A stretch of 33,506 bases of DNA from Guillardia theta CCMP2712 (Eukaryota; Protista; Cryptophyta), in contig NW_005434390.1 in the NCBI RefSeq assembly GCF_000315625.1, positions 1-33,506 of the forward strand, written 5' to 3'. The notes beneath the pieces are model-generated. The model had not been told where the DNA came from and did no database searches. It saw only the letters and a list, made by a program, of their open reading frames with translations. The first letter of the stretch is position 1. Every line of letters begins with the position of its first letter. Shown here in pieces: positions 10,007-12,795 of the stretch. The translations under genes were made by a program, and so were the position numbers.

Positions 10007-12795
10007 ATGGCCGACAGCTTTTCCATGTGGCCCTTGCAGGGATCCCAACTTCTTCCTTTCCACGAAACGGTGCTCAGCGGAGCAGATGCGCATGTCTTCA
10101 TATTTCGCCTCCATCCCTCCAACGAGGGTAGTGTTGGCTGCTGCTCCAGCAAGCGGTTTGATGAGGCGGCCTTTGCTCAAGAGCTCCACCTAGCCATCCA
10201 TCGGCTGCTCTCAGATCGCTGGGCAGCTCTATCTCAAGTCTACAGCAGCAGGGTCTACGCCGACCTCGACTGCCTCCCTCCCTTGGGTTCGAGTGAAACC
10301 GAGAGGGAGAACCGGATGAGGTACCTGTGCTCCTGCACAATGTTCGTTCCTGTCATCACGTGGGGGACGGAAGACAGCTTGTTGGATGAGCTTACGATGC
10401 TGAGCAACGAAAGGGACAAGGAGAGCAGCTTCCTGGCTAGCGTGTTAGCAGCCTTCTACCTGCTGAACAAGGGGATTGGGCGGCTTAAGGCCATAGTCCC
10501 GATCCTGCGCGACGAGTCATGCGGGAGGGTGTCGATCACGGAAGTGTGTAGGAACCTGAGCAAGACCTCGTCGCTGATCAACTGTCACAAGGCAAGCCTG
10601 CTGCTGCTGGAGGGCGGGGTCAGGAAGGATCAGAGTATGATCGTGGAGTACCTCGCCTCCTTCTCCGTCCAAGAAGTGATTCTGTCGCTGCTTCCTGTCC
10701 ACTGGAGGGTCGCAGCAGGGTTGAAGACGAGCGACATGGGAGTGTCCAAGGACATCCAGGGAGGGCACAGCATGTTCATGATGGGTGAGAACGATATCAA
10801 GACGAGCGCGTACGAGGCAGGGCAGGCGGTGACGACGATACTGCTGGAGCTGATGGACGTGTATGTGAGGAGGAAGATGTGGGAGTTCTCGAGCCACAAC
10901 TTCCGGGGGATCGAGCTGCTGCAGATGTTCAAGGAGGCCGGGGTCGACGACGTGTTCTTCGAGAACTTCGCGCTCAAGAGCTTCGACTCGTTCGTCCGGC
11001 TCAACTCCTCCCGCTCGTGTCGAGGACGCGGCCTGAGGAGGCGGAGTTCCTCTCCTGCGAGACGCTGAACCTTAAGGGGACGAGCAGTACCAGAGGAACG
11101 TCGACACGCTCAACATGCTGGTCGAAAGGTTCAAGGACGACGAGCGGCTGCTGCCGCTGGACACGAGGCTGAGGAGGTACAGGGACACAGAGGTTGACGG
11201 GATCCTTGCGCTAAGGACGACCAACTCGCTGGAGACGGCTCAGTTGAAACTGCCGGCGCAGCGGGGCATCTTTTGCCTGCTGTGTGTCCAGCTGACGTTT
11301 GCGCTGAACCAGATCAAGCTGACGGTGAACTTGGACCTGGTGTGGATGCGGGACCCGGTCTGTGTAATCGCCACTCCCAAGATCGTCTCAGTCCCCAGCC
11401 TGCTCAACGTCGTGCTGGGTTTCCTCTGGTGCTTCCTGCTGGGGACTGCGGTCGTCGTTGACAAGTTCGGGACTCCGTTCCAGCGGAAGCGGGTTATGAT
11501 CAACACCATCATCAGCATCCTCGTCGGGTACATCCTCACCTTCTTAGTTGACATCGTCCAGTGCTCCATCTACACGGGCAAGTTGGACCGCTGCTGTCAA
11601 GGGTTCCACGTCTTCGTGACTATAGCGTTCGTCATTCTGTTCCTCTACTTTGCGCAGTACAAGCAGCAGTACGTCTGGATCGCAGTCTTCTTCATCCAGG
11701 GCGCCTACTGCATCTTCCAAGGGCTCAAGGAGGACGACTGGACTAGCTACATCTTCTACTTTCTCGGCAGCATCTGCATTGTCATCTCCTGCTGGGTGCT
11801 GATAGTGTACCGCATCAACTACCGGAAGACGCTCAAGAAGCTGGAGCTGGAGATGCTGAGCTTCCAAGGGACGTGGAACCAGCTGGTAGAAGGGAAGGCG
11901 GAAGTGCTGAGAACGCTGGACGAGAGGGTGGGGGAGATACAGGCCGAGCTCAAGTCCAAGATCGCGCAGCGGGTAGAGTCGCCGCTGCAGCAGCTGGTGG
12001 AGATGCTGGAGTTGAGGAGAACGAGGTACAGCACCCGCATGCACAAGATCACACAGCAGTGTCAGGACCTGCAGCAGCTCTACCTCGAGGCCCAGCAAGT
12101 CAGCGCTGACTTCCAGCAGCTGATCGCTACCTGGACGCCAGTCGGGTTCGTGTGGGAGGGCAAGCTCAAGTCAGTGGCGAGGGCGATACAGAAGACTGTG
12201 AGGTCGTACGGGAGGGACGCATCCTGTCTGACGGACATCGTGCGCTGCACTGTGGTGGTTGACTCGATCGACGACGTGCTCACGTGGGTTGAAGGGCTAA
12301 AGAGAAACTCGATGGTGGCACATGGGATAGCTACCCCGAAGAATTTGAAGAGGAGGATATCGACGGATGCGAGAATCGAGGTGAATCGGAGGAGGAGGAA
12401 GGGGAGGAGGAGGAGGAGGAGGCGGCGGAGGCGGAAAGAGGGAGAGAGGGGGAGGGGAAGGAGGATGTGGTCGGGGACAGGAGGCGAAGAAGGGTTTGGA
12501 GAATTTTGTGGGCTGACGTGGTCTTGTTTGCAGATGGATAGAGATGACTTTCTTGAGAAGAAGTTTATGAGCATAACAAGCATCAAGAACAGGTGAAGGA
12601 GAAAGAAGAAAGGAGGCGAGGGGAGGTTGGTAGAGGGTGTTGCTGGAGAACATGCTGAGGGGATAGGAGGAGGAGGAGGAGGAAGAGGAGATGGTCAGGG
12701 GGAGGTAGGAGGCTGAGTTTGTCATGTGCAGGTACTCGATGAAGTCGAATTTCGCTTCCACGGGAGGATATCGCGATCTCTGCGTCTGTGTGGAG
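10007..12795 (+). CDS. TIR-like + SAM-like + ~6TM + RelA/SpoT-synthetase-like protein (3' end probably in the gap at 12894-13423)
   Basis: TIR-like elements HVFIFR...FAQELHLAI...RVYADLDCL...LCSCTMFVPVITW...IVPIL (~10090-10510); SAM-like ELLQMFKEAGVDDVFFENFALKSFDSF; six hydrophobic segments (11260-11815); LKSVARAIQKTVRSYGRDASCLTDIVRCTVV...SIKNR|YS..STGGYRDLCVCVE. Introns 12381-12533 and 12593-12731, donor at 12796; frame break near 11000-11090. Confidence 0.75.

Follow-up and report, generated by a model that had tools for sequence, protein, structure and literature searches.

The window analysed here, 33,506 nucleotides of contig C284 (NW_005434390.1) in the 87-Mb nuclear genome of the cryptophyte alga Guillardia theta CCMP2712, carries on its + strand, from position 10007, a gene that the genome assembly breaks into two open reading frames (ORFs). 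We put at roughly even odds (about 0.5) the reading that this gene specifies one expressed 892-residue membrane protein in which an oligomerising TIR/SAM front end is joined to an RSH (RelA/SpoT-type) domain acting as a nucleotide pyrophosphokinase. From the N-terminus, the order of parts is a degenerate TIR-fold domain, a helical region, a SAM-like module, a juxtamembrane motif, six membrane helices, a helical linker and the RSH-like domain. The whole architecture is present in a transcript-derived protein, P0063 (UniRef A0A7S4PEN9, 892 amino acids), which matches our exon model residue for residue, and it recurs in a transcript of Hanusia phi. A first-pass annotation, made from the letters of the window, had proposed a membrane-bound, TIR- and SAM-bearing relative of the RelA/SpoT synthetases at this place; the motifs that it quoted all lie where it put them, on the + strand. 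Neither the ORFs nor the full protein gave a useful match when scanned with Pfam, NCBIfam and PADLOC.

A C-terminal domain related to RSH synthetases

The C-terminal domain has, in its predicted structure, the fold of the RSH synthetase superfamily, with the synthetase motifs conserved, in agreement with the RelA/SpoT-type fold that had been proposed for it. A profile built from 15 family sequences (A8) and searched against solved structures matched Tas1 (PDB 6ox6) at E 6.3e-9 (38.9 bits) and nothing else meaningful; earlier, smaller C-terminal profiles had matched Tas1 at E 0.61 and 3.6e-6. The AlphaFold2 (AF2) model of the domain has a predicted local distance difference test score (pLDDT) of 80.5, and when it was submitted to Foldseek, RSH synthetases made up 50 of the 50 matches listed.

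The first part of the domain (12150..12380, + strand), delimited by the profile match to Tas1 and by its invariant columns, contains K722, R726, K730, D738, D744 and R747. All six are invariant across 15 divergent sequences, as are V746, N811, R812 and R826, while E863 and H879 are nearly so. The conserved columns follow the motif order of RSH synthetases, namely a basic patch, an Asp-containing strand, G-Y-R and E-x-Q. From this order and from the Tas1 alignment we infer that the conserved residues are the RSH catalytic residues.

The domain escapes the standard models. Pfam RelA_SpoT (PF04607) found no match in the ORFs or the full protein at E up to 1-10, and a search of the genome with it gave only two other loci, on contigs C47 and C24. 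These are canonical RSH genes, and the only HD_4 hydrolase domains of the genome sit within them. The final 67 residues of this domain, by comparison, match at least 39 places in the genome, many within open frames of 1000-1095 amino acids. Set against the two loci found with RelA_SpoT and HD_4, this indicates a large RSH-like family in G. theta that escapes Pfam.

Toxic RSH enzymes such as CapRel and FaRel2, which are bacterial or phage-associated and regulated by antitoxin domains, target tRNA, and the C-terminal domain described here could likewise pyrophosphorylate a macromolecule, for example a tRNA 3' end, making the protein a translation-arresting effector. We consider this unlikely, because the only significant sequence relative among solved structures, Tas1, is a nucleotide pyrophosphokinase that modifies AMP, ADP and ATP and kills by ATP depletion (PMC10083569), and because the best structural matches are SAS1 and SAS2.

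A degenerate TIR-like domain at the N-terminus

We modelled residues 1-335 from an alignment of 12 paralogue sequences. The model (pLDDT 69; predicted template modelling score, pTM, 0.72) alternates strands and helices, and its three-layer alpha/beta fold superposes, over most of its length, on TIR domains of known structure, the structural alignments covering model residues 28-285. The TIR-like core occupies residues 25-180 (10079..10546, + strand), with strands at residues 30-35, 87-89, 112-119 and 166-169. A helical region, residues 181-290 (10547..10876, + strand), separates the fourth strand of the TIR-like fold from its last helix; this region is seen in the AF2 secondary structure and is conserved in relatives. 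The N-terminus thus models as the TIR fold that the first-pass annotation had predicted.

Two structural searches agree on the nearest folds. Foldseek placed the TIR domain of flax L6 first (E 7e-3, probability 0.99), and a scan independent of Foldseek, against 48,161 representative chains, returned RPS4 (10.9), the CRISPR-associated Cat1 TIR (10.2), RPP1 (10.0) and SARM1 (9.3). The Z margin of the TIR domains over generic flavodoxin-like folds was only about 2-3, for a model of medium confidence (pLDDT 69, 12 sequences). As this margin over generic three-layer folds is modest, we sought evidence for a TIR domain in the sequences themselves.

An exhaustive profile search of 1.84 billion representatives yielded 48 clusters. 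The distant relatives so found are far more canonical than the window protein and carry F-H-x-F-I-S-Y-R, K-V-F-L-D-x-x-C-L, V-F-V-P-L-L-S-W, D-N-V-L-L-E and A-I-x-P-x-L-x-G. Two of the distant relatives have TIR_2 matches below threshold (E 7e-4 and 0.024; the best at 20.5 bits against a cut-off of 28), and two relatives match the TIR-like FxsC model weakly. When the family alignment (A5) was compared by hhalign with the bona fide TIR_2 domains of G. theta itself (A6), the two aligned over 93 columns spanning strands one to four, with the TIR strand motifs in order (probability 64%, E 6.6e-5). Other searches were negative: with E values up to 10 allowed, residues 20-185 matched neither Pfam TIR nor TIR_2; a six-frame search of the genome with TIR_2 found 17 other loci, none from the family of the window protein; and the first N-terminal profile (A1) reached only chance-level TopBP1 matches among PDB sequences. 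Taken together, TIR homology of the N-terminal domain is likely but not proven.

The hhalign comparison also locates the catalytic position. The canonical TIR glutamate (N-C-R-R-E) aligns with the glutamate of the family motif D-N-V-L-L-E, which in the window protein is Ser145 (10439..10441, + strand) according to the hhalign column map and alignment A5. A serine at this position had already been suspected by eye, and the profile-profile alignment now puts it at residue 145. All of the distant relatives in alignment A5 have Glu in this column, while the G. theta paralogues have His, Tyr, Leu, Val or, once, Glu. Since Ser145 and other residues occupy the catalytic column, it is a reasonable inference from the alignment that TIR catalysis has been lost in the subfamily of the window protein.

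The TIR-like module might nevertheless still be an enzyme or a nucleotide sensor, using another acidic residue such as Glu128 or binding an NAD-derived ligand, and so be no passive scaffold. A HMMER alignment puts the catalytic Glu of flax L6 on the short helix that holds Glu128, the D-N-V-L-L-E glutamate is kept in four G. theta relatives and in all of the distant relatives, and one G. theta TIR is reported in a preprint to make cyclic ADP-ribose (cADPR; bioRxiv 10.64898/2026.04.20.719644). We regard an active module in the window protein as quite unlikely, since the match to L6 falls short of significance (E 0.16), both subfamilies vary at the Glu128 position, the better-supported hhalign map points to Ser145, and the first-strand motif F-H-x-F-I-S-Y-R is degraded. 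Glu128 itself, in S-L-L-D-E-L, was considered as the catalytic residue on the pattern of plant TIRs and rejected: the position is variable, and hhalign maps the catalytic Glu to Ser145, treating the stretch behind the third strand, this short helix included, as an insertion.

It is also quite unlikely that the N-terminal domain is no TIR homologue at all but has a three-layer fold of the generic flavodoxin-like or nucleoside deoxyribosyltransferase-like type and serves some unrelated purpose. Plant, animal and bacterial TIR domains head both structural lists, TIR_2 is the only Pfam family that recurs among the relatives, and the TIR strand motifs align in order. In addition, the only two PDB sequences that the family profile matched are both flax TIR domains, at an E value (0.16) that is not significant.

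A SAM-like module

Residues 297-345 (10895..11040, + strand) probably have a SAM fold, judging from sequence profiles. A 16-sequence family profile (A7) searched against the PDB found the SAM domains of SHIP2/EphA2 best (E 9.8e-6), and SAM domains accounted for 20 of the 23 matches. At the aligned place, relatives score at the Pfam cut-offs for SAM_1 (23.0 bits) and SAM_2 (20.5 bits), and the UniRef name of one of them, GUITHDRAFT_113953, is 'SAM domain-containing protein'. The SAM-like module of the first-pass annotation is supported by profile A7 and by the scores of relatives. The window protein alone gave no Pfam SAM match. The profile alignment covers only about four helices (profile positions 12-53), and model residues 297-335 have pLDDT 44-76, the model having ended at residue 335.

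The membrane block and its flanks

A hydropathy scan predicts six membrane helices in residues 416-601 (11250..11807, + strand), the number previously proposed. Lys/Arg-rich loops, judged by eye, lie on the same side as both termini. The six helices, together with these positive charges on the cytosolic loops, lead us to expect that both soluble ends are cytosolic, as an ATP-using enzyme needs.

Ahead of the block, and overlapping its start, is a juxtamembrane motif at residues 378-418 (R-L-x-x-Y-R-D ... L-A-L-R-T-T-N-S-L-E-T-A; 11136..11258, + strand) that is conserved in all paralogues and in distant relatives and is the best-conserved stretch of the whole family. Behind the block runs a long helical, coiled-coil-like linker, residues 602-715 (11808..12149, + strand), which was recognised from its sequence; residues 14-35 of the C-terminal model form a helix that continues this linker. 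Two conserved cysteines, with the pattern Q-C ... G-x-G ... C in paralogues, lie in the loop between helices 3 and 4 (P0063 residues 516-530), on the side opposite the termini.

SLATT domains serve as membrane effectors in bacterial nucleotide-signalling conflict systems. The last membrane helix and the helix that follows match SLATT models weakly (Pfam SLATT_6, E 0.014; NCBIfam SLATT_1, E 0.006), the matching stretches being residues 677-746 of P0006 and 496-595 of P0020; a relationship is unproven.

Proposed function

In the working that we favour, the degenerate TIR and the SAM-like module would act as self-association or adaptor modules, and their association would gather the C-terminal domains at the membrane, where the RSH domain would move pyrophosphate from ATP onto a nucleotide's 3' hydroxyl. 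The product could be of the (p)ppApp or (p)ppGpp type, and making it could either send a signal or drain ATP. An immune or stress-response role is a guess by analogy, from the shape of a locally duplicated, divergent family.

A further step, which we hold to be doubtful, would make these proteins cryptophyte-specific membrane 'signalosome' enzymes, in which TIR/SAM assembly activates a cytosolic, Tas1-like adenosine/guanosine 3'-pyrophosphokinase as part of a non-plastid alarmone or ATP-depletion pathway for stress or antiviral cell fate. In members that retain the catalytic glutamate, a TIR NADase and the RSH domain might share a nucleotide.

Several results weigh against the favoured working, in addition to the narrow structural margin of the TIR fold. 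None of the Pfam RelA_SpoT, TIR and SAM models reaches the window protein. The conserved SAM Trp of relatives is replaced in its subfamily, and the SAM-like stretch is modelled poorly; a two-copy complex prediction of that stretch scored 0.00, which gives no verdict and is evidence neither way on self-association. A search of the genome with HD_4 found no stand-alone alarmone hydrolase, so that a reversible cytosolic alarmone signal would have no obvious off-switch. Finally, no reads of the raw-read RNA run X22, of which about 6% was read, were placed on the locus.

One spliced gene behind two frame breaks

In the assembly, the + strand of the locus holds an ORF at 10007-11068 (353 amino acids), a second at 11115-12596 (493 amino acids) and a G-G-Y-R-D piece at 12763. 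Contigs from public sequencing runs, one of DNA (X1) and two of spliced RNA (X2 and X3, from two studies), were placed on 9900-12890. Compared with the assembly, each of the three contains one more C behind 11009 and one more G behind 11075, in a short homopolymer run at either site. Because DNA and RNA contigs of three runs carry both bases, we conclude that the assembly is two bases short here. With the two bases added, the succession of frames 2, 1 and 0 becomes one continuous frame. All three frames hold a paralogue-like stretch between 10990 and 11115, the middle one, in frame 1, reading S-C-E-T where paralogues have S-C-D-E, and in at least 10 paralogues elsewhere in the genome the linker is open within a single frame of 800-1000 amino acids. 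The two ORFs are thus one reading frame and one gene.

The locus is expressed as one spliced mRNA. The RNA contigs X2 and X3 join 9900-12380 to 12534-12592 and 12732-12795 and then continue; the segments that they lack, 12381-12533 and 12593-12731, are both canonical GT..AG introns. On the + strand, a 5' untranslated region of approximate start (9839..10006; record 9 of X2 begins 61 letters upstream of 9900) precedes the first in-frame ATG at 10007. Coding exon 1 (10007..12380, residues 1-792) is defined by the extra bases in three runs, the continuous P0063 and the donor GT at 12381. Intron 1 (12381..12533), which has a purine-rich repeat inside, is skipped in X2 and X3 and leads to exon 2 (12534..12592, residues 793-812), which ends in K-N-R. 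Intron 2 (12593..12731), whose joint occurs in two RNA runs, is followed by exon 3 (12732..12795, residues 812-833), which contains G-G-Y-R-D; exons 2 and 3 rest on the RNA contigs, the splice sites and P0063.

Beyond 12795 the transcript encodes V-G-W-V-I-N-E, an exon sequence that is absent from the window and, when the genome was searched, from the whole assembly. The last exons are therefore placed in the run of N at 12894..13423 (+ strand), in agreement with the paralogues, which encode the equivalent C-terminal part by two exons. This gap would hold the last 59 residues of the product (834-892), including H-I-C-E-I-Q and a final helix. The first-pass annotation had expected a missing exon with an H+CE+Q motif in this gap, and P0063 supplies it, ending in R-H-I-C-E-I-Q-V and then the final helix. 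Taken at face value, the raw assembly, with its two frame changes and the stop at 11066-11068, points to a pseudogene or to a pair of separate genes. This reading is almost certainly wrong and was rejected, because three runs of DNA and RNA carry the missing bases, spliced transcripts cover both ORFs, and P0063 is continuous.

These data correct the public gene model, GUITHDRAFT_122124 (P0009), a hypothetical protein of 681 amino acids in the same 90% identity cluster as P0063. The model starts at Met112, spans the frame breaks with a false intron and ends at K-N-R; its shortening at both ends and its false intron follow from the two missing bases and the assembly gap. Purine-rich GGA/GAG repeats at 12383-12471, 12657-12697 and 12800-12893 fill the introns and border the gap.

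Relation to known systems

The single domains are of known kinds. No paper of the literature searched describes their combination, TIR-SAM-membrane-RSH, or its non-plastid setting in a eukaryote. Among eukaryotes, RSH enzymes have been reported chiefly in plastids and, in the form of domains that Pfam detects, in fungal NLRs. The RelA_SpoT N-terminal effector domain of these immune-receptor-like proteins is the closest precedent from a eukaryote (bioRxiv 10.1101/2022.03.16.484565). The fungal NLRs are soluble NACHT/NB-ARC receptors, found with PF04607, and lack the TIR-SAM-membrane context.

Among bacterial enzymes, Tas1 (also Apk1) of Pseudomonas aeruginosa synthesises (p)ppApp and is a toxin secreted by the type VI system; it contains a PAAR domain and comes with an immunity protein (PMC10083569). 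The window protein, in contrast, is eukaryotic, is predicted to pass the membrane six times and bears TIR-like and SAM-like modules. SAS1/RelQ and SAS2/RelP are soluble bacterial single-domain tetramers, and the algal domain, in contrast, escapes Pfam RelA_SpoT. Compared with SARM1/TIR-1, which is ordered ARM-SAM-SAM-TIR, the TIR-helical-SAM order of the window protein is reversed; SARM1 has neither membrane block nor RSH domain, and its TIR is the effector, whereas the TIR of the window protein lacks the glutamate. If our reading is right, a pyrophosphokinase fold of the bacterial toxin type is placed in the algal cytosol and wired to oligomerising TIR and SAM immune modules and a six-helix membrane block.

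Family and neighbouring gene

The same architecture of TIR, SAM, membrane block and RSH domain is found in GUITHDRAFT_113953, GUITHDRAFT_121453 and relatives from Hanusia phi and Baffinella (E 1e-13 to 1e-4). Unlike the window protein, the group of GUITHDRAFT_113953 and GUITHDRAFT_121453 keeps F-H-x-F-I-S-Y-R, the D-N-V-L-L-E glutamate and the SAM Trp, and because the motif and the glutamate are kept, its TIR may be catalytic. Members that keep and members that lose the glutamate offer a natural contrast for whether TIR catalysis and pyrophosphokinase output are coupled. In G. theta, the Glu-retaining kind has four loci (on C71, on C229 and two on C49), and the derived kind, to which the window gene belongs, has at least 13 copies. 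Several copies form local arrays: C117 holds a head-to-head pair, C37 a tandem array of three and C4 an inverted pair. Such arrays suggest recent duplication or gene conversion; the middle parts of the C117 pair are identical in protein sequence. All of the named family members come from cryptophytes (Guillardia theta, Hanusia phi, Baffinella frigidus), the others being unnamed transcriptome or metagenome records.

The first-pass annotation had called the gene a paralogue of its neighbour in the window, at 20671-24646 (+ strand), with a shared membrane block. This holds in part. The neighbour, as 21359-24646, shares significant similarity in the RSH-like core only (BLASTP E 6e-15 and 2e-5); its membrane block gave no significant alignment with that of the window protein, and the close paralogues lie on other contigs. 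The neighbour has two RSH-like domains in one frame of 1095 amino acids, without a TIR- or SAM-like front, and the first of the two looks degenerate, with G-G-Q-R-D, and C-E-L-R in place of C-E-x-Q. As a lead only, the ESM Atlas points to look-alikes of the C-terminal domain that carry no annotation, in clusters labelled Foraminifera or Bacillariophyta as well as in clusters with fusions to TPR or ankyrin repeats.

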